Shown: positions 1 through 61,328 of the stretch, one piece after another
Layout: every line of letters begins with the position of its first letter
Numbering within the stretch: the stretch's first letter is position 1
Assembly (NCBI GenBank): GCA_028826165.1
Contig: JAPDFW010000033.1
Location: 682,001 to 746,000 of the forward strand
DNA length: 64,000 nucleotides
Origin: Anaeramoeba ignava BMAN
Taxonomy: Eukaryota; Protista; Anaeramoebae
Direction of reading: 5' to 3'
Notes under the pieces: model-generated
What the model saw: the letters and a program-made list of their open reading frames with translations, nothing else
Told to the model about the DNA's origin: nothing
Database searches by the model: none
Made by a program: the position numbers and the translations under genes

Positions 1-1949
1 TTGATTTGTAATTTGTCTTTTTTTCAAATCAAAAATATTTGCATCATTCATTAATAATAATTCTATTAATTTTTCTTTTCTTCGAGAGATTAATATTGAA
101 AGAGCAGTTGCATTATATTTTGTTTTTGAATTTATATCAATTCCATTTTCAATAAGATATTTAATAATTTTAGATGATGGATTTTGATTTTCACAAGCAA
201 TATGTAAAGCGGTTTTATTTTCATTTGTTTTTGAATTAATATCAATTCCATTTTCAATAAGATATTTAATAATTTCAATGGAAATATTTTCATTTTCACA
301 AGCAAAATGTAAAGCAGTTTCATTTTTATATTTTGTTTTTGAATTGATATCAATTCCATTTTCAATTAGATATTTAATAATTTCAAATGAAATATTTGGA
401 TTTCGATTTTTACAAGCAAAATGTAAAGCTGTTTGATTATATTTTGTTTTTGAATTAATATCAATTCCATTTTCAATAAGATATTTAATAATTTCAATCG
501 AAATATTTTGATTTTCACAAGCAAAATGTAAAGCTGGTTTGATTATATTTTGTTTTTGAATTGATATCAATTCCATTTTCAATAAGATATTTAATAATTT
601 CAATTGATGGATTTTTATTTTCACAAGCAAAATGTAAAGCTGTTTGATTATATTTTGTTTTTGAATTGATATCAATTTCATTTTCAATAAGATATTTAAT
701 AATTTTAATTGAGATATTTGGATTCTGGTGTTTAGAAACAAAATGTAAAGCAGTTTCTTTATCTTTTGTTTTTGAATTAATATCAATTCCTTTTTCAATA
801 AGATATTTGATAATTTTAATTGATGGATTTTTATTTTCACAAGAAAAATGTAAGGCATTTTCATTTTGTTTTGTTTTTGAATTTATATCAATTCCTTTTT
901 CAATAAGATATTTAATAATTTTAGATGATGTATTTCTATTTAGACAAGCAATATGTAAAGCTGTTTTATTTTGATTTGTTTTTGAATTAATATCAATTCC
1001 TTTTTCAATAAGATATTTGATAATTTCAATTTTTGGATCCTCATTTTCACAAGCATAATGTAAGGCAGTTTGGTTTCCAGCTTTTGTTTTTGAATTAATA
1101 TCAATTCTTTTTGAAATTAAAAATTTTATAATTTCAATTGATGAATGTACATTTTTACAAGCAATATGTAAAGGAGTTTCATTTTGTGTTGTTTTTATGT
1201 TTATATCAATTTTTTTTGAAATTAACAGTTTGATAATTTCAATGGAAATATTTTTATTTAGACAAGCAATATGTAAAGCTGTTTCATTGTAATAACTTGT
1301 TAAATTAACATCAATTCCTTTTTCAATAAGATATTTAATAATTTCGATTGATGGATTTTCATTTTGGCAAGCATAATGTAAAGCTGTTTGGTTTTGATAA
1401 GTACTTGTGTTTATATCAATTTTTTTGGAAATTAACAGTTTGATAATTTCAAATGAAGCGTTCTTGTTTTTGCAAGCATAATGCAAAGCTGTTTCATTAT
1501 AGTTTGTTTTTGAATTAATATCAATTCCTTTTTTAATAAGATATTTAATAATTTCAAATGATAAACTTGTATTTGTATTTTCACAAGAAATATGTAAAGC
1601 TGTTTCATTTTTCTTTGTTTTGAAGTTGATATTAATTTTTTTGGAAATCAATAATTTGATAATTTGTAATGATGGATTTTCATTTTCACAAGCTAAATGT
1701 AATGCAGTTTTATTTTCGATTTGTTTGAGAATTGATATTAATTCCTTTTTTGATTAATAATTCAATTATTTCTTTTTTTGAATTGTTTATAATTGCAATA
1801 TGTAATGAATTTCTTTTTAAATTATCAGTTAAATTTGGTTTTATTCCTTTTGAAATTAACAAATTAATCATTTCTTTTGAAACTTTGTTTTCAATAGCAA
1901 AATTTAAAATTGGTTTATTTTCTTTTTTTAATTTAATATTTTTATTCAT
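1..1949 (-). CDS. Ankyrin-repeat protein, 3' end runs out of the window, with two apparent frameshifts (~1710 and ~535)
   Basis: ORFs 1710..1949 and 515..1651 and the unannotated frame below 535 are continuous ANK repeats (TALHFAC...IEIIKYLIEKGIDINSKT). The N-terminus (KPILNFAIENKVSKEMI) and the region near base 50 (LLMNDANIFD) match the ankyrin-BTB gene at 43835-48455. Confidence 0.85.
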
Positions 1950-2284
1950 TTATAAATAAAAAAAAAAAAAATGAATTGAAAAATTAAATAAAAAATTGTT
2001 CTTAAATTAAATTGATTTTATTTATTTTTTATTTATTTTTTATTTATTTTTTATTTGATCAAAAAAAATTTTCTTTTTCTTTTTCTTTTTTTTTACAGAT
2101 GGAATTAAAATAAATACAACTCATAAAAACAAATTAAAACAATAAAAAACAAATTAAAACAATAAAAACAAATTTAAAACAAAAAAACACCCAAAAAAAT
2201 AATTTTTTTTTTTAAATAAAAATTTCACTTTTTTATTTTTTTTAGTTTTTATTTCAAATTAACCAAATTTAAAAAAAAAAAAGA

Positions 2285-4185
2285 ATGACAAGTTCAACAG
2301 AATCAATTTCAACGAATTCACAAAATTGGGTGGGAATAGAATTATCAGGAATTGATACTACTGATTTTGAAGAAATTACAAGTGAAAATGCAGATAAATT
2401 TAGGAGAATGGTCGAAAAAGAAGAAAACGAAAATTTAAATTTAAATTTAAATTCAAATCAAAATTTAAATTTAAATGAAAATCAAAATGAAAATCAAAAT
2501 GAAAATCGAAATGAAAATCAAAATGAAAATCGAAATGAAAATCAAAATGAAAATCAAAATGAAAATCGAAATGAAAATGATCTTGATGGTTTTAAAGATA
2601 TTAATTTTGAAGAAGAATACACTGATTTTTATTATTTTAATAAAAAATTTAGTTCAAAAAAAAAATCTCAAAATGGATCACTTTCTCAATCAATTTTCAA
2701 TTTAGCAAATACTATTATTGGTGCAGGCAGTTTGTCTATACCTTTTGCTTTCAAAGCATCAGGAGCAATATTGGGGACTCTTTTACTTGTTTTTAGCGGT
2801 TTACTTGCAGTTTATTCAATGTATTTGCTAGCTCAAATTAGTGAATTTTCTAACGTTTTTGGATATTCTGAACTGGCAAAAAAAGCTTATAAAAAAGTAG
2901 GTTCTAAATTTGTTGTTTTTTGTGTTTTCTTGTTGACTCTTGGCGCTTCTGCTGGCTATTTTTGTTTTATTGGTGATCTCAGTTCTTCTATTATGGGTCA
3001 TTATTTGGATACAAAAAAAACATTCCTTAAAGATCGTAGATTTTTGATACTGGTTGTTGTTGTTTTGGTATGTTTTCCATTGACCTTTTTCGATAATATT
3101 GTTAAGCTCAGTTTGACAAGTTTGATTTCTCTTTTGGCTGTTTTTTATGTTGGCATTCAAACAGTTATTAAATCCAGTATTTATCTCCACAAAAACGGGA
3201 TCAATCATCAAAAAATAGTTTATTTCAACCTAAAATCGGATCTTTTTTTGGCAATTCCCATTTTTTCTATCTCTTTTATTTGCCAAATCAATTTTTTCCC
3301 CATTTTGGATCGTCTGGCAAATCCAACAAAAAAAAGAAAAAGATTTGTAATTTTGGACTCAGTTGGATCAAGTGCTTTCTTTTATTTCTTTATCGGGTTA
3401 TTTGGTTATTTGAATTTTTATGACGAAACTCAAGGCAATGTTCTTTTAAATTATGGGAACGATCCAGCATCTATAATTGGTATTTTAAGAACAAAATTAT
3501 TCAAAAAAAAAAATTTCTTAATTCTAAATTCTTATTCTTATTCTTATTTTTATTTTGATTTTTATTTAAAGCTAAATTTGCAATGTTGATCACAATCATC
3601 TTTTCAACACCAATTATTTTTTTTGCTTGCAAAATATCTTTTTATCAGTTATTTTTTTCAGAACAACATCCAAGAAAATGGAAAAAAATAATTAGTATTT
3701 TAATTCCATTTTTTATAGCACTTTTCATTGGAATATTTGTACCAGACGTTGTTCCAATTTTTGGATTTACAGGAGCTCTTTCTGGGAATATAATTGTATA
3801 TTTACTTCCCGCTTTATTCTTTTTAAAATTGCGACACGATATCATTTACAAACATGTTCCAATTGGGGACGATTCAAATGAAATTGAGGAAAATAACGGA
3901 AAAAATGCAATGAAAGATGAAGGATTTGATGATCAAAATCACGAGAGAAAAAAATCATCAAGTTCCATTTCTACTTTTAATGAAACCACAAATTCAAATG
4001 AAAATTTAGTTTTAAATCAAAAAACGAAAGAAGATGAAATTGTTCCTACTTTTATGGAAACTTTATTTTTGAGTAGAAATAATTTTATAATAAGTATTGG
4101 TCCAATATTATTAATTCTTTATTCAGTAGTTTCAACAGTATTTTGTGTGCGGCAGTCTTTGATTGAATTAAAGAAATCTTTTTAA
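2285..4185 (+). CDS. Amino acid transporter, AAAP/SLC38 (Aa_trans) family, 2 exons (intron 3480-3571)
   Basis: SIFNLANTIIGAGSLSIPFAF motif, multiple TM segments, FGYLNF. The GT..AG intron joins ORFs 2285 and 3583 in frame. Confidence 0.9.
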
Positions 4186-52324: not shown

Positions 52325-55300
52325 ATGGTTGATTCAATTGGACCATATTTTCTTGGCGAAAGTTTAGGAGAAGGAAATTTTAGCAAAGTTAGACTTGGAA
52401 TCCACAAATCAACAAAAGAAAAAGTAGCGATCAAAATCATATCAAAACAATTATGTTTATTAGAAGAAACAACAAGAGAGCAAATACAAAAAGAAATATT
52501 CATTTTATGTTTATTGAAGAATCCAAATGTGTTGAGACTTTATGATGTTTATGAAACCGAAAAGGAATTGTTTCTTGTTATGGAATATGCTGATAAATCT
52601 GATCTATTTGTTCGTTTATCAGAAAAAAAAATGTTTACTCCAAATGAAGCTTTAAGATATTTTCAACAATTGATTTTCGGTTTGGAATACTGTCATGCTC
52701 ATCTTGTTGTTCATCGTGATTTGAAACTTGAAAATCTTCTTTTGAATCAAAAAGGTCAATTAAAAATTGGTGATTTTGGTATGGCTAGGCTTATGAAATC
52801 TAATTCTTTATTGGAGACTTCTTGTGGTTCTCCTCATTATGCTTCTCCTGAAGTTATTGAGGTATATCCCCCTTTTTTTATTGATTTTTTTTTTTTTGAT
52901 CTTTTTCTTAATTTTCCCATTTTCATTCACAGATCCAACTTAAAATCAATTAACTTTATAAATTAATTATAATTTTAAATATAATTCTAATTCTAATTCT
53001 AATTCTAATTCTAATTCTAATTTTAATTCTAATTCTAATTTTAATTCTAATTCTAATTCTAATTCTAATTCTAATTCTAATTTTAATTTTAATTTAATTC
53101 TAATTTTAATTCTAATTCTAATTCTAATTCTAATTCTAATTCTAATTCTAATTCTAATTTTAATTCTAATTCTAATTTTAATTTTAATTCTATTTTAATT
53201 TTAATTTTAATTTTAATTCTATTTTTAATTCTAATTATAATTTTAATTTTAATTCTAATTTTAATTTTAATTCTAATTTTAATTCTAATTTTAATTCTAA
53301 TTCTAATTTTAATTTTAATTAATTATTTAAAAAAAAGGGAAAAAGATATGATGGAACTAAATCAGATGTTTGGAGTTGTGGAGTAATTTTATTTACATTA
53401 TTAACAGGAAGACTACCATTTCATGATAACAATGTTGTACAACTTTTCAAAAAGGTTCGAACACGACAATTCATGCTTCCAAAAAATTTATCAAAAGATC
53501 AAGTTGATTTAATTTGTCGAATGTTGACAATAGATCCAGATCGAAGAATATCAATTCCAGAAATTAAACAGCATAAATGGTTCCGTTCTAATTTTCCAGA
53601 CAATTATGAACCACCTAATGTTATTATTAGAAAATCAATTGCAAATTATTATAGTTTATCAACTTCCAATATGGATCTTATTTCTAGTTTTAAAACACTT
53701 AATATTTCTCAAGCTAAAAATCTCCGAAAAATTCTTACTAATCCACAAATTACTCCAGATCATTCTTTGTTTCAAGAATTTCAAGAATTTCCAGAATTAC
53801 AAAATAGCAATTTATTTAGTAAAAATTTAGTGTCCAATTCTTTTATTTAATTTTAATTTTAATTTTATTTTTATTTTTATTAGTCGATGATTCAAGAAAT
53901 CAAGAATCTGTTGAACCACAAAAAAATGGTATTGAATTAGATGTAGATCAAGATAATGTTGCAAAAAAAGAAAATTCAAATGAAATCAAGCACGATGAAT
54001 GGGTTGAAATTGATTTTAATGAATTTCCAAGTAAATAACATTAATAAATATTTAAATATAAAATAAATATTAAATTCAAAATAATTAATCCAAAATAAAC
54101 ATCAAAATAAATATTTAATTCAAAATATATATTCAATTCAAAATAAATATTCAATTCAAAATAAATATTTAATTCAAAATAAATATTTAAATTTAAAATA
54201 AATATTTAATTCAAAAATAAATATTTAATCCAAAATTAATATTAAATTCAAAATAAATATTTAATTCAAAATAAATATTTAATCCAAAATAAATATTTAA
54301 TTCAAAATAAATATAAAAATAAATATTTAATCCAAAATAAATATTTAATTCAAAATAAATATTCAATTCAAAATAAATATAAAATAAATATTTAATTCAA
54401 AATAAATATAAAATAAATATTTAAACCAAAATAAATATTTAAATATAAAATAAATATTTAATTCAAAATAAATATTTAATTCAAAATAAATATTTAATCC
54501 AAAATAAATATTTAATCCAAAATAAATATTTAATACAAAATAAATATTTAATTCAAAATAAATATTCAATTCAAAATAAATATGAGTGATTTGAGGCTGA
54601 TGTGAAAAATTTTTTTTTGTTTATTTTTTTTCCCTTTTTTAATTAAAATTGAACAAGAAATCTCGATAAAAGCCTCAAATTTTGGTGCTTCCTGAGGCAC
54701 GATAAAGGTTTATTTCTTTGAGAATTAGAAAAATTGAATCAAAAAAAATCAATCAAAAATCAATCAAAAATCAATCAAAAAAAAAGAAAAATGAATTAGA
54801 TTCTTGTCAAAGAAAAAAGGAATAGAAAGAGTGATTATTTTTTCTTAATCTTCTCTTGTAAAAATCATCATTGTAAAAGTATCTTCTGTTCTAAAAGGAT
54901 TCACGGGAAATATATGAGCATCACTTATTCCAAAAAAATTTGAACTAGTTTCGGTTTCTAAGATTTCAGTCCAATAATGACCTTCATTGGCATTTCCAAT
55001 ATGGTGTATTGATCCAAGCAATTTCATTTCAGTTTCTTGATTAGGACAACTCTGAAACATGAAAGATTTGACATTGATCTTTTCTTCACATTGAATTTTG
55101 GTTCCAATTCTTGTTGTAGATTGAGTCAAGGAATCATAATAAGTTCTCTTGAAAAAAATAACCAAATATTTAGGAATAGTCAAAAGAGACAATTTAATGG
55201 ATCTTTCTACTTTTTGGTCACAATTTTCACAGTGATAATGTTGAGAGAAATCTAAATCCTTTTCAGCGAAATAATTATCGAGCATTGAAGAAATGCTAAT

Positions 55301-58300
55301 TTCTCCGTTCAAAATTGGAAAGCTAATCACAAGACTTGTTTCTTGAGGAAAGGAGTAAGTAAATCTTTTACATTTCTTACATGTCACTTTTTGCACAATA
55401 CGAATGCGGAAATCATTTATTATAGCTCGATTGTGAATATCAAATTCTTGATAAAGAAGATCATATGGAACATTGAAATCTGAAATATTCTCATTTGATA
55501 TTAAATCCATCAAGGAAACAAAAAATTCATGTATATCTTGTTCATTAGTGTTGGAAAATTGAGTCACATGCTCTCTTATTACCTTTCTTAGTGGAGTTAT
55601 ATTAATCGATTCTTCTGAAGATTGTAAAATATCGCTCAAAGTTTCAGAAATATCACCTAAACCTAATAGTTCAATTACAGAAGTTCTTAAAAGCACTTGA
55701 ATGATGGAAGCTATATAGCATGAATTGTGTGAATTTGGAATCTTTCTTAAATTCTAATCAAAAATTAAAATGAGAAAATCAAAAAGAAAAAAATAATAAA
55801 AGAAGAATTTTCTTACTCCTGTTTTGCAAATGGATATTGATGATGTAAAATTCTTTTGTTTTGGGAGATTATCTTGAAATTTTGAAATGCGCAAATTTTT
55901 GATTTCTTCTTTTTCTTCAAATTCAATTTTTCTCTTGATTTGTTGATGTTTTCTGGAAGAACTTCGTAGATTTCCATTCATATGATTCATTTCTTTCATC
56001 TTCTTTTCTCTTTGTGAATGAAATTTTTGTGTTTCATTTGGAATCACCTTTTCATTTTTGGAATTTGTCATTTGAGTATTAAAGAAAGGAATAGAATAAT
56101 TCTCCTGAATTAATGCTGAATTTTGTTTAATTCCAAATTCTTTCTCTTGAAAAATTTGTTCAATTATAGGTATTCTTCTTTTTCGAAAATTGGTGTTTGG
56201 CATTCTTGCAGTTTTCAAGTTTCCTTTTAAGAAAATAAAAATGTGTGATTTTTTAATTTTTGCAATTGGATTCTTGTAAAGAAATTTGAGTGCTCTATTC
56301 ACATTTAAAATAATTGGTGTTGTGTTACTAAGTTGAGATAAATAATCAAAAAGTGAATTAATAGTTGTAATATCCCCAAAATTTGCCTTATTCCTTGATA
56401 TGTTACCAAAATGACGATCAGACATATGTTTAGCATGATTTTTAAGAAAGAAAATTACCTTAATATCTAAAAATTGCGAACTAAAAGCATCAAAAATCAT
56501 CCCCAGAACAAAGTTATTTTTAATGTGTCCTCCATTATCAGAAAAAATCCTTAGTTTTGATATGTTTAATAGATTTCTTTTATGTTGCCATTCATGGAAT
56601 TTATATCGAAAATCTTGAAAACTTTGAAGAACAAATTGGGAATCCTATAAGAGAAATAGAAAATTAATAGAATCAAAAAGGAATTCAATTTTTAAACTTA
56701 CTTTAGTTTGATCCTCTGAAATATAATCGAAATAGAACAACTGTTTTTCAAACTGAATAGTAATATTGAAGATCACCCATGATTTTTTATGATAGAATTC
56801 TTGTGTTTCCCAATTATCTCGATACTCTTGAAAATTGACTGCAAAGTCCAAGAATAAAATAATTTGATCAAGAAGTTGAATTTCCGATTTGTATAAATTT
56901 CTCATTTCAAGAACTTTTCTTTGGTGATTCTGCCTTTTTTTCATGATTGGATTAGAACATTTTGGACACTGGAAAAAAAAAGCTGTTGCAGAATGAATTG
57001 AAAAATACTTTTGAAGAAGTGAGCAGAAAGTCCCATATTTAAGATCATTTCCTTTATCCTGTATTTGATTAAAAAGTCTTTTCTTTGTCAAACTTGTGCG
57101 GAAAACAGGTATATCTTTTCTGCTGTAAAAATCAATCGTTGTAAATGTTTCTAAATGATCTAAAATTCGAAGGATATTTTTTTCATGATTTGTGAAAACC
57201 CATTCTTTTGATTTTGTTTGAGATTTTAGGTAAAATGGAATCTTAAAACGATGATGTTCACAATTTAAATGTCTCTTTAGCTTCCATGAATTTAAATTTT
57301 TCAATTCCTTATCACAAGAAGAACAAAAAACTTTTTGTGTATCTAAATCATATGAAAGAAATGGATCCTGATCGATCATTTTTTGAGTATTCATTGGCAC
57401 TTTCTTTCCACTTTTTGAAATAGAGATTTGAACATTCAAAATAGGAATTTCCTCTGAAGTTATTAGAAGAACTTGTTCTTTAACACAATTTAGGAAGATT
57501 ACAAGTTGTGAATTGTTTGAAATACGAACAGTTTTATCTTGAAAGAGATAGGTGAATGCTTGAATCTTTTGTCGAATGTTGAAGTTATCTTTCACATCTT
57601 TAATTAAGGTTTTAAAGTTTAGGATCTTTTCAGCATCAAACACACAAAAATTTCCTTGAAAACGAATAAAAAAAAGCTTCATTTAAAAGAAAAAATGAAT
57701 TGAGATTTTATCAAAAAATTCCTTTTGAAATCCTCAAAAAAGTGGACATTGATTTAATTAAAAAAAAGAAAGAAAAGGAAAAAAATCTTCTTGATCTTAT
57801 TTCAAAAAAAAAAGAAAAAAACTAAAGAAAAAATTGATTCTTTAAACTATTTGAAGAAAAAAAGAAATTGAAAGGAAAAAGTGGACATTGATTTAATTAA
57901 AAAAAAGAAAGAAAAGGAAAAAAATCTTCTTGATCTTATTTCAAAAAAAAAGAAAAAAACTAAAGAAAAAATTGATTCTTCAATCAAAATACAAATGTCT
58001 AATATGTAAAGATATTTTGTAATTAAATTATCGATAAAAACAAATTGAAAGGGAGAAGAAAAGCAAAATGAAAAATCTGATCTTTTTGATTTTGATTGAT
58101 TAAAATATGATTCAAAAAAAGTTATTTTAAAAAAGAAGTCTAAAATTTCTCTTTTATTTTTTTAAGAGATTTAAAAAAGAAGACATATATGAAATTTAAA
58201 TTCCTTTTTTAAAAAAATTCCTTTATTAATAAAATCAAAAGTAAATAAATTTGATGAGAATTTTTTGGAACAATATAAAAAAAATCACTCAATAAATTGA

Positions 58301-59047
58301 TTATTTGATATTTTAATTTTGAGGCTCAAGAGGCTTTTTTTTTTATTGATTTTTTTTGCAACAGAATCACTCATATTTAATTCAAAATAAATATTTAAAT
58401 TTAAATTAAAATTCAAAATAAATATTTAATCCAAAATTAATATTTAATTCAAAATAAATATAAAAATAAATATTTAATCCAAAATTAATATTTAATTCAA
58501 ATTAAATATTTAAATTCAAAATAAATATTAAATTCAAAATAAATATTTAATTCAAAATAAATATTTAAATTTAAATTCAATTTAAAATTCAATTTAAATT
58601 TAATAAAAAATAGTCCAAGAAAATCATAAATCAAAACCAATCGAAATTATACAGAAAGTAAAAAAACAACCCAAAAAAATCAAACCAGAAAGAGAAAAGA
58701 AAAAAAGATTAGTAGATTGGTTCGGAAAAACAATAGAAGAAAAAAATGAAAGGAAAAAAAGAAAAAAACCAACTATTATTCCACTTATTGTTTTTCAATC
58801 ACAAAAAAATTTACTTCTTTTTACAAAAGATTTACAATCTTTTTTTAAAAAAAAGAAAATTAGTTGGAAATATCCAAATCTTTATAACTTACAAGTTGCA
58901 AAAAAAGGTTTAGAATTCAAAATTTTATTAACTGAATTATTTAATGATCCAAATTCAAATCGAATTAAAATTAAAATTATTTATAAAAAAGGTTCAGAAA
59001 AATATTTTAAAAACATTGGAAATCAAATTTTAAAAAAAATTAAATGA
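52325..59047 (+). CDS. AMPK-related (BRSK/SNF1-like) Ser/Thr kinase with a probable KA1-type C-terminus. Exons 52325-52861, 53338-53818, 53884-54030, 58614-59047
   Basis: LGEGNFSKV, VAIK, HRDLKLENLL, IGDFGMA, LETSCGSPHYASPEV^GKRYDG.KSDVWSCG. The spliced frame stays open across intron 54031-58613 to TGA at 59045-59047. Confidence 0.88.
54845..57682 (-). CDS. Sola-like transposase fused to a ubiquitin-specific protease (USP/C19), ~905 aa. Exons 57682-56702, 56644-55817, 55753-54845
   Basis: Introns GTAAGT..TAG (56701-56645) and GTAAGA..TAG (55816-55754), both phase 0. Transposase motifs FLDFAVNF, IFSDNGGHIKN, HAKHMSDRHFG. USP motifs PNSHNSCYIASIIQVL, EQDIHEF, PKYLVIFFKR, HHIG...GHYW, ISD. Confidence 0.82.
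57736..57981. repeat. ~105-bp direct repeat (period ~139 bp) upstream of the transposase ATG
   Basis: AGTGGACATTGATTTAATT...AAATTGATTCTT begins at 57741 and at 57880. Confidence 0.9.
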
Positions 59048-59250: not shown

Positions 59251-61328
59251 ATGAAAAAAATAGCAAAATTTTTTAAAGATCAAGGAAATCTTGCATTTGC
59301 AACAAAAGATGTAGAAAGAAGTATTATAAAAGGAACCAATAGAGATAAAGTAGCGCCAAAAGAAAAGCATGTATTATTAATACTTCGCGAAGTGAAAAAA
59401 ATGGATGCAGAATATGATTTTATGCTTAAAATTTTAACTGGAAGATTAACAAAGAAAAATTATATAATTGTTTTTAAATCACTTATTTTTCTTCATCGAC
59501 TCATGATTGAAGGAGATCGAAGATTTATGAGAGAATTCTCCCTAAAACAACAAAATGCGGGCTTTTTTGGTCTTTCGAGATTCAAGGATCTTTCTTCTCC
59601 TGATTCTTTTGACTATTGTGAATTTATTCGAAATTATTCTTCTTATCTTGAGGAAAAACAAATCAATTTCAGAGAAATTTCCTTCAGTTTGGATTATGAT
59701 TTGGAAACTATTTCTGCTAAATCTCCTTATCGCAAATGTGAAATTGCTAGAGTTTTAAAAGAAATTCCAAGTTTTCAGAGCCAACTTGATTTAGTTTTTC
59801 TTTGTGATGTAAAAAAAATTATTTTTAATTTAAATTAAAAAATTTTTATTTTTAATTTTTAATTTTTAAATTTAAATAGCCAAGTACTAAGAATACAAGT
59901 CCCATTTTTGCTGCTGCTTTAGCTTTATTAATTCGTGATTCGACAAGATTATTTAAAACTATTTATGAAGGAATTTCAAATATTCTTGGTATTTTTAATT
60001 TTATAAATTATTTTTAATTTTATAAATGAATTTTTAATTTTTAAATTTTATTTAATAAAATAAAATAAAAGATGTTTATTTCAAATTAAATGAAAATAAA
60101 GCAAAAAAAGCACTAGAAATGACTAAAAAATTTAAAGAACAAGTTGAAAAATTATCAGATTTCTCAAATAAATGTGGATCACCAATTATTGAAGGAGAAG
60201 ATGATTTAAAATCAATTACAAACTCACTAAAAAGATTAATTAAATCATTAAGCGCTCAAATCAATAATGGAGAATTTATTGAAGAAGATATTCCCATTCA
60301 AACTTTAAATTTATCAGATAAAGATGATGATGAAGATGAAAAAGAAAGTGATGATGATGATGATGAAAGTAAAAGTAAAGAAAGTGATGATGGTGAAAGT
60401 GATAGTGGTGAAAGTGATAGTGATGAAAGTGATAGTGATGAACCAAAAAAATCGAAAAAACCAACAAAAAAAAACATAATTGAATTTAGTCCAAGATGTA
60501 AAAATTTTCAAAAACAAGAAAATTAAAAAAAAAATAAAAAAAATTTCCCAAAACATGAAAAGTTGAAAAATTAACATAAATTTTTAATTTCATGTTTTAT
60601 AAAATTTTCAAAATAGCCAAAAACAAAAAGGTTTCTTTAACTGTAACTCCAAAAAAACAACAACAACAACAAGCACAAAAAATAGAAGAATCCATTATTG
60701 ATATTCAACCTCAAAGAAAAAATATTCAAAAATCAAACGATGAATTTGACTTCCTCAAAGAGATTGACCAAAAACAACCACCAACAACAACAAAATCAAA
60801 TAATTTTGGAATTGATTCATTTTTTGATTCATTACCAAATTCAAATATGAACACACCTCCCAAAACAAATCAAAGAATTTTTGATAATGGATTTGGACAA
60901 ACACAAAATGATCCATTTTCTACAAATGGATTTGATAATTTCAATTCATTTTCAACACAACAAAATCAGTTTTCGAATTTTAACACAACATTTTCATGGG
61001 ATAATACATCATTCAATTCAAATCAAAATCAAAATCAAAATCAAAATCAAAATCAAAATCAAAATCAAATTCAAAATCAAAATCAAAATTGGAATTGGAA
61101 TAATTCAATTCAAAATCAAAATCAAAATCAAAATCAAATTCAAAATTCAAAATTCAAAATCAAAATCAAATTCAATTCAATCAATCAGCAAAAAATATTG
61201 GAAATAAAATTTTCCAAAATTCACATTTATCTCCAAAAAATTGGCAAAATCAACAAAGAACTATTCAAAACAGACAAGAAAAGAAAAAAGATGATTTTAG
61301 TGATTTAATTGATTTTTCTTTAATTTAA
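59251..61328 (+). CDS. ANTH-domain clathrin adaptor (AP180/PICALM-like), ~4 exons, probable frameshifts near the 3' end
   Basis: IIKGT..D..APKEKHV, IVFKSLI.LHRLM.EG, FIRNYS.YLEEK. The disordered tail has DPF and DLIDF motifs. Confidence 0.85.

Follow-up and report, generated by a model that had tools for sequence, protein, structure and literature searches.

In the genome of the protist Anaeramoeba ignava BMAN we have characterized a 3.8-kb element that we read, with a probability of roughly 0.85, as an autonomous and recently active cut-and-paste DNA transposon of the Sola2 type. The element lies in a stretch of 64,000 nt (contig JAPDFW010000033.1 of GenBank assembly GCA_028826165.1, positions 682,001 to 746,000 of the forward strand), called the window below, and all coordinates are positions in this window. 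A first-pass annotation had described an intact and probably young Sola-like transposon at this place. The Sola-type assignment is borne out by a match of catalytic motifs. The C-terminal USP deubiquitinase domain of the encoded protein, which is the unusual feature of the element, was not mentioned in the earlier finding.

Gene structure

The single gene of the element is made of three exons on the minus strand (57682-56702, 56644-55817 and 55753-54848; 327, 276 and 302 codons) with no internal stops. Earlier the gene had been described as an undisrupted open reading frame (ORF); this holds insofar as no stop interrupts the coding parts, although the frame is really divided by two short GT..AG introns. 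We searched the exons of the window one by one, unjoined, and did the full-length work on the public protein P0155 (905 aa), which comes from a sister copy on contig C1, is 98.7% identical to the window copy (12 residues differ) and shows the same arrangement of exons. The junction of intron 1 has independent support from an intronless relative in the genome (L047), which reads through this position. In another relative (L044) there is no intron at the intron 2 position, and the transposase core and the USP domain are found in one 570-aa frame. The genetic code of the window is standard, and its introns are short and of the GT..AG kind. The ciliate genetic code was ruled out, as neither TAA nor TAG occurs in frame over the 905 codons and long ORFs in the standard code are present in the window.

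Both introns (57 and 63 nt) have lengths that are multiples of three and are open in the exon frame up to the terminal TAG; an unspliced transcript would thus stop right at each intron end. This arrangement may be due to chance (roughly 1 in 500, by our estimate) or may be a trace of recent intron gain.

Transposase core and Sola2 motifs

A profile made from A. ignava paralogues was run against 1.84 billion representative proteins and produced 1,709 matches at E up to 1e-3, with 317 at E up to 1e-10. The relatives matched by the profile come from Naegleria, Diplonema, Phalansterium, Smittium, A. flamelloides and many metagenomes; the 30 named ones are from protists, one fungus and metagenomes, with no Sola2 reference by name among them. 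In an alignment of 73 sequences, D363 and H397 are invariant, and H253, D279, F393, G398, D403 and H405 are nearly invariant. This pattern of conservation points to a DDD triad whose second and third Asp have 39 residues between them. The AlphaFold2 model of residues 1-500 of P0155, computed with the same alignment, has a mean predicted local distance difference test (pLDDT) score of 81.7, with values >90 over residues 270-460. Foldseek matches of the core (Mos1, ISCth4, IstA, lentiviral integrases, PIWI, UvrC and terminase nucleases) indicate an RNase H-like fold, and the best PDB matches of the model are DDE transposases and integrases.

Pfam detected no transposase family in exon 2 of the window. 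Word-index protein searches with exon 1 and with exon 2 were blank as well, full-length relatives having lengths beyond the range that these searches admit. The Pfam family DUF7869 (PF25273), which covers the stretch between the second and the third Asp and has no functional name, gave no reportable match in the window exons at its cut-off of 26 bits. A scan of the assembly with PF25273 gave no match, but its controls were silent too, so that the scan is uninformative. Relatives of the window protein do match this family (P0008 with E 5.8e-15, the paralogue L048 with E 2.8e-4), and a language-model search placed exon 2 beside DUF7869 clusters. We rejected the hAT superfamily, which the BED finger of the protein could suggest, because the duplication is 4 bp and not 8 bp and the spacing between the Asp residues is short and lacks an insertion domain. 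A Ginger or retroviral-type integrase, which could be suspected from the SDNG-like second motif, was rejected as well, the only trace of it being a weak rve match on one distant relative.

The comparison with Sola transposases was made by eye, motif by motif, on sequences printed in the supplements of papers, namely the cores of Sola1-1_AP, Sola2-1_HM and Sola3-1_HM (Majorek 2014) and the full Sola2 transposases of Dictyostelium fasciculatum (DFa-2) and Polysphondylium pallidum (PPa-1) (Bao & Jurka 2013, PMC3627910). The Sola2 motifs read, in DFa-2 and PPa-1, respectively, CPYC and CPMC; VLMDFKENI and ILCDFKENI; FFWSDGAKHFKS and TFWCDNARHFKS; and YHGKSDVDRHF and YHGKSECDQHF (PMC3627910). The window protein has CPKC, LFLDFAVNF, IFSDNGGHIKNN and NHAKHMSDRHF. 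By this visual comparison all core Sola2 motifs (CPxC, LDFxxN, FSDxGxHxKN and HGKxxxDxHF) are present in the window protein, and some paralogues come nearer still to the Sola2 motifs, such as the one on contig C40 (FFSDGGNHLHNN and YHGKSACDRHFG). DFa-2, PPa-1/4/5 and Sola2-1_HM from Hydra have the same type of DDD transposase, with the motifs CPxC, [LM]DFxxN, [FW]SD[GN]xxH[FI]K[SN] and HGKxxxDxHF. Every one of these motifs differs in Sola1-1_AP (FYSDNCGGQNRN, ERGHTQS) and in Sola3-1_HM (AKSDNASSYHGN, EPCRGKD). The motifs had been thought intermediate between the Sola groups; they match those of DFa-2, PPa-1 and Sola2-1_HM, not those of the Sola1 and Sola3 representatives.

N-terminal beta-grasp and BED domains

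The N-terminal part of the protein is predicted to start with a beta-grasp domain. Foldseek matched residues 1-90 to the PB1 domains of NBR1, Par6/aPKC and MEKK with template modelling (TM) scores of 0.6-0.7 and probability 1.0, and to ubiquitin with TM of about 0.5-0.6. At the end of this domain we saw no C-terminal Gly-Gly of the kind that ubiquitin-like modifiers have, and one paralogue produced a weak match to the Crinkler header (E 0.01). The match of the next domain, a BED-type zinc finger, is marginal (PF02892, E 1.5e-4, 22.2 bits versus a cut-off of 20.6, residues 112-143, CSSC...HLNCEH).

The USP deubiquitinase domain

Exon 3 carries a full USP (peptidase C19) domain (Pfam PF00443, E 5e-26, 92.2 bits versus a cut-off of 23.9), with PDB matches to USP21, USP15, USP8, USP46 and USP7. 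Four diverged families of such elements have kept the Cys and His boxes, the QQDxHEF motif, the zinc ribbon CxxC...CxxC and the Asp, and the layout of beta-grasp, BED, DDD core and USP is common to at least four diverged families in the genome. In the family of the window element (family A), the USP exon is open in six of the six copies, with identity of 99-100%. Among the 169 relatives examined, the USP domain was observed in five A. ignava proteins only. Five proteins (P0155, P0002, P0001, P0003 and P0156) are annotated by NCBI as ‘ubiquitin carboxyl-terminal hydrolase (22)’ or ‘USP domain-containing protein’, and not as transposases. The published DFa-2 and PPa-1 transposases have no USP and end in low-complexity tails instead (PMC3627910). 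Capture of a Ubp6/USP14-like gene (a Ubl plus a USP) was rejected, the domain having no special similarity to USP14.

Between families, the USP parts are 41% and 23% identical, in step with the transposase parts (37-44% and ∼33-35%), and the host USPs in the genome reach at most ∼33% identity, over a part of the domain. Taken together, these figures argue that the fusion is old in the lineage and has been maintained. We tentatively propose, at slightly less than even odds, that transposition of Sola2 in Anaeramoeba requires an active USP, and perhaps the N-terminal beta-grasp domain with it, as part of the machinery.

Arguably, the USP could instead be a passenger, that is, a captured fragment of a host gene with no role in transposition. 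The acquisition of foreign genes such as Fanzor1 by Sola2 elements is known (PMC3627910), there are USP-less relatives in the same genome (L047, L053 and L054), and the activity of the USP is a prediction from its sequence. Still, four families at 23-41% identity, about as diverged as the transposase parts, retain the Cys, the His, the Asp and the zinc ribbon; the reading frame of the transposase continues into the USP in every family, and in L044 it does so without a break. The lack of any host USP closer than ∼33% further implies that a capture, if there was one, was ancient and was followed by maintenance of the domain. We consider the passenger explanation unlikely.

Termini, insertion site and length of the duplication

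The termini of the element are GAGTGATT at one end and AATCACTC at the other, so that the element reads 5'-GAG...CTC-3'. The left junction is ...aaaataaatat/GAGTGATTTGAGGCTGATGTGAAAAA at 54584 and the right one is ...TTTTTTGCAACAGAATCACTC/atatttaattc at 58372 (here and below, a slash marks an element boundary). In the terminal inverted repeats (TIRs) the outer eight bases pair perfectly, and 10 of 13 bases pair beyond a 5-nt gap in the left arm. With the base composition of the window (A 0.40, T 0.42, G and C 0.09 each; G+C ∼18%), an exact inverted match of eight bases at fixed boundaries has a chance of ∼8e-6. A GAGGC motif occupies bases 11-15 of the 54584..54609 terminus and is also found near the ends of a sister family of elements, family B.

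The element sits in an AT minisatellite with a unit of 18 bp. Taking out the element together with one ATAT restores this unit exactly, as the first-pass annotation had stated, and a net restoration of 4 bp is equally observed for the copies on contigs C128 and C80 and for two copies of family B. All 10 two-ended insertions (five in family A and five in family B) have ATAT on both sides, and since ATAT accounts for only 1.4% of window positions, this is a genuine choice of target.

Insertions of both families are mostly found within AT-rich minisatellites that have ATAT in the repeat unit (flanks on contigs C24, C128, C80, C90, C93, C96 and C105). The minisatellite arrays may serve as safe landing pads, or insertions elsewhere may have been selected against.

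The length of the target site duplication (TSD) had been called ambiguous, and we agree: a duplication of ATAT with GAG...CTC ends and a duplication of TA with TGAG...CTCA ends restore the site equally. By analogy with published elements we favour 4 bp, for two reasons. Homologous elements with GAG ends vary at the outer positions of the duplication, and a duplication of 2 bp would need two extra fixed bases outside of it in 10 of 10 insertions. If the ends were TGAG...CTCA, the dinucleotide TA would be duplicated as in insertions of the Tc1/mariner kind, and the outer A and T would be mere flanking preference; all 10 two-ended insertions indeed read A-TA-T/GAG...CTC/A-TA-T, and empty sites are restored under either reading. 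The transposase, though, is of the Sola2 and not of the Tc1/mariner type, the 4-bp duplications of published Sola2 elements with these ends vary (AAAT, ATTT and ATAT), and the DFa-2 consensus begins at GAG with the preceding T outside the element (PMC3627910). The fixed outer A and T again tell against a TA duplication, which we judge quite improbable.

Comparison with published Sola2 elements

Sola2 elements of D. fasciculatum have TIRs of 12-13 bp and AWWT duplications, and those of P. pallidum have imperfect TIRs of 16-22 bp and duplications ATAT, AAAT or ATTT; the DFa-2 consensus begins with GAGC and its 3' end is GGCTC (PMC3627910). The dictyostelid elements thus share with the A. ignava element the GAG...CTC ends and the 4-bp AWWT duplication, ATAT included. 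Their TIRs are 12-22 bp long, versus eight perfect or ∼26 imperfect base pairs here. The TIRs had been described as unusually short; the perfect 8 bp is confirmed, yet it is only slightly below the published Sola2 range. The transposases are of similar size (888 aa in published Sola2, 905 aa here). The differences are in the overall build. The published dictyostelid Sola2 are elements of 10-15 kb that carry Fanzor1 and have transposases with acidic or low-complexity tails and without a USP, whereas the A. ignava element is 3.8 kb long, has one gene with an N-terminal beta-grasp domain and a BED finger, and is found at ATAT only (10 of 10 insertions).

It had been suggested that the element mixes traits of Sola1 with those of Sola2/3 and may represent a distinct lineage. 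As AWWT targets, GAG ends and short TIRs already occur together in published Sola2 (PMC3627910), the element is no mixture of traits; judged by its sequence features, it is a regular Sola2 in its catalytic motifs, ends, TIR length class and target. A separate Sola lineage, intermediate between Sola1 and Sola2/3, could be argued from the low identity to published Sola2 transposases outside the motifs and from the set of beta-grasp, BED and USP domains, which is not seen in DFa-2 or PPa-1. Against it, published Sola2 elements agree with this one in all four core motifs, in the spacing of the DDD residues, in having GAG ends and a short TIR, and in a 4-bp target of the AWWT type, and the motifs of Sola1-1_AP and Sola3-1_HM differ; we find such a lineage very unlikely.

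Copies, age and sister families

A DNA search of the whole A. ignava assembly (42.8 Mb, 147 contigs) revealed six copies of the element, on contigs C24 (the window element), C105, C1, C128, C80 and C59. Four copies align over the full length (1-3789), and every copy that bears an end starts or stops at identical bases, so that homology sets the boundaries independently. The five two-ended copies all read ATAT/GAG...CTC/ATAT and have unrelated flanks. A pattern search of both termini across the assembly produced the six copies alone, with no MITEs (miniature inverted-repeat transposable elements) or other short derivatives. The first-pass annotation had placed the boundaries at 54584 and 58372 and had counted a single copy with no empty site in related strains, or copies with other boundaries, as evidence against its reading; the genome search with the element and its termini found the element to be multicopy, with these same boundaries shared by the copies. 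The copies could, in principle, be segmental duplications of a host USP gene, as the NCBI product name ‘ubiquitin carboxyl-terminal hydrolase (22)’ might suggest, but homology that stops at identical bases, the inverted repeats with a 4-bp duplication, unrelated flanks on six contigs and the DDD transposase core in the protein make the chance of this practically negligible.

Five copies differ by 0.41-0.93% substitutions, and the C59 copy by ∼1.9%. The description of the element as intact and young with a perfect duplication agrees with the divergence of <1% in five copies and with ATAT on both sides. The intact copies appear to be those on C24 and C1 and, probably, on C128; single-base frameshifts are present in the C80 and C105 copies. 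The C59 copy (L006, G000:C59:5005-8587) has many indels of 1-3 bp in exon 1, with exons 2 and 3 open. It is located ∼5 kb from a contig end of the long-read assembly, and its indels are as likely to be low-coverage long-read errors as real decay.

Searches of the assembly with the exon translations revealed sister families. Family B (37-44% amino acid identity) has copies on contigs C90, C96, C93, C48 and C105, and five of five read ATAT/GAGAGATTCGAGGC...CTCTC/ATAT. Other diverged paralogues include single elements on C40 and C26, decayed copies on C73 and C57, and USP-less relatives on C142, C67, C51 and C64. The single ends of the C40, C57 and C73 families have an ATAT/GAGAG junction as well, and GAGAGATTC-type ends are present in four sister families.

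Several further observations concern these relatives. Three bases past the 3' end of the C40 element (GATTCTCTC/ATAT) stands GAGAGAAATCG (L044:3485-3520, G000:C40), which resembles the start of a facing Sola2 end and may mark an adjacent or nested insertion. The locus L047:685-3609 (G000:C142) holds an intronless transposase relative in one frame of at least 975 aa. It carries long Asn/Gln repeats and, at the C-terminus, a CCHC zinc knuckle; no USP was seen in it, and it represents either a further Sola2 subfamily or a copy that has been domesticated. Farther removed are the Sola2-like genes at L053:94-1950 (G000:C51) and L054:1453-3207 (G000:C64) (585-619 aa, also with no USP), which have a helix-turn-helix region where the beta-grasp and BED part would stand.

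Points that weigh against the interpretation

Some of the considerations above speak against our interpretation. The membership in Sola2 was established by a visual match of motifs to printed sequences rather than by a computed tree, and the window protein reaches no Pfam transposase model, DUF7869 being reached by relatives only. The splice model and the recent activity are predictions from sequence. The number of intact copies is uncertain, because some of the single-base indels between copies are perhaps errors of the long-read assembly. Within this genome, duplications of 4 bp and 2 bp are inseparable, as every insertion is at ATAT; we chose 4 bp by homology with published Sola2, in which the duplications vary. 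Finally, the role that we assign to the USP is purely inferential.

Feature coordinates and neighbouring sequence

The features of the element are listed in Table 1. The doubling of the ∼138-bp unit in the 5' non-coding part might reflect a duplication of the promoter region inside the family. An 11-bp repeat of the 3' non-coding part (AATCAAAAATC-like, 54720-54790) matches many short arrays genome-wide with identity of 80-90%; it is a common microsatellite-like motif and does not represent extra copies of the element.

Upstream of the element is a gene for a Ser/Thr kinase with at least two exons (Pfam Pkinase, E 9e-53; 52325-53850), whose final visible frame stops at 53850; downstream, a separate open frame begins at 59251 (59251-59838). 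Since introns here are ∼60 nt long, the element looks intergenic rather than located in an intron of the kinase gene.

Table 1. Features of the putative Sola2 element in the window (positions 5' to 3' on the forward strand)
Feature	Position	Strand	Description and support
Whole element, putative Sola2	54584..58372	- (gene on minus strand)	3,789 bp; same boundaries in every end-bearing copy (n=6 copies)
TSD, left copy (ATAT)	54580..54583	.	ATAT both sides in 5/5 two-ended copies
TSD, right copy (ATAT)	58373..58376	.	ATAT both sides in 5/5 two-ended copies
Terminus, 3' side of gene	54584..54609	+	GAGTGATT (8 bp perfect TIR), 5-nt insert TGAGG, imperfect extension
Terminus, 5' side of gene	58352..58372	-	Reverse complement is GAGTGATT then CTGTTGCAAAAAA
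Two tandem copies of ∼138 bp unit	57690..57965	.	5' non-coding part; twice in C24, C105, C1 and C128, once in C80 and C59
Exon 1	56702..57682	-	327 codons from ATG; beta-grasp, BED finger, CPKC, first catalytic Asp
Intron 1	56645..56701	-	57 nt, GTAAGT...TAG; junction same in P0155
Exon 2	55817..56644	-	276 codons; second and third catalytic Asp, then low-complexity linker
Intron 2	55754..55816	-	63 nt, GTAAGA...TAG
Exon 3	54845..55753	-	302 codons plus stop; USP (peptidase C19) domain
Beta-grasp (PB1/ubiquitin-like) domain, residues 1-90	57413..57682	-	AlphaFold2 pLDDT 85.3, Foldseek
BED-type zinc finger, residues 108-146	57245..57361	-	PF02892
DDD core, RNase H-like fold, residues ∼239-470	56216..56968	-	Spans intron 1; pLDDT >90, Foldseek
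Codon D279, first catalytic Asp, in LFLDFAVN	56846..56848	-	73-sequence alignment
Codon D363, second catalytic Asp, in IFSDNGGH	56537..56539	-	Invariant in 73 sequences
Codon D403, third catalytic Asp, in HAKHMSDRHFG	56417..56419	-	73-sequence alignment
USP catalytic Cys codon, in NSCY	55718..55720	-	Conserved in four families
USP catalytic His codon, in GHYW	54977..54979	-	Conserved in four families
USP Asp codon	54920..54922	-	Conserved in four families

Proposed mechanism and significance

A plausible course of transposition can be outlined from the domains and the insertion sites. The BED finger and the core would bind the GAG ends together with the subterminal GAGGC motifs that families A and B have in common, and the beta-grasp domain may aid oligomerization into a paired-end complex. 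The DDD site would then excise the element and join it to ATAT with cuts staggered by 4 nt, and repair of the gaps would leave ATAT on both sides. The USP would most likely deubiquitinate the transposase itself, chromatin or repair factors during transposition. Such deubiquitination could stabilize the enzyme or steer the repair; the same has been suggested of the OTU and Ulp1 domains that other transposases carry.

Fusions of this kind have precedents. Ginger1 transposases with a C-terminal OTU or Ulp1 domain, Mutator-like elements (MULEs) with Ulp1 and Helitrons with OTU have been described (Bao, Kapitonov & Jurka 2010, PMC2836005). In these, as in the A. ignava element, a cysteine protease of the ubiquitin/SUMO system is joined to the C-terminus of a transposase, and the proposed logic is the same; the transposases belong to other superfamilies, and the proteases to other clans (OTU and Ulp1, not USP/C19). 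The Trichomonas vaginalis protein XP_001314237.1 combines transposase_11 (IS4/IS5-like) with peptidase C19 (PMC2836005). Here too a C19 deubiquitinase and a DDE transposase form one protein, and the organism is likewise a metamonad protist, but the transposase is IS4/IS5-like (PF01609) and not Sola2; this protein was compared by its description only.

In the literature we found no description of a Sola element with a USP, and the eukaryotic transposons of A. ignava are not covered in its genome paper. What is new is the architecture of beta-grasp, BED, DDD and USP; the Sola2 type itself was already known. With the in-frame USP, a third clan joins OTU and Ulp1 among the ubiquitin-system proteases that have repeatedly become fused to eukaryotic transposases, and the conservation of the USP across diverged families argues that it is used.

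To our knowledge, Sola2 elements are rare and none has been studied experimentally. A small, young and apparently intact family with a strict 4-bp target is therefore a reasonable candidate for a first functional Sola transposase. For A. ignava itself, the listing of transposon genes as host ‘ubiquitin carboxyl-terminal hydrolases’ means that the apparent USP family of this organism is inflated. If the USP is indeed required, one 905-aa protein of a 3.8-kb element would both cut and paste DNA and edit ubiquitin marks, and the element would offer a compact natural system in which to ask why unrelated transposon superfamilies keep gaining ubiquitin/SUMO proteases.

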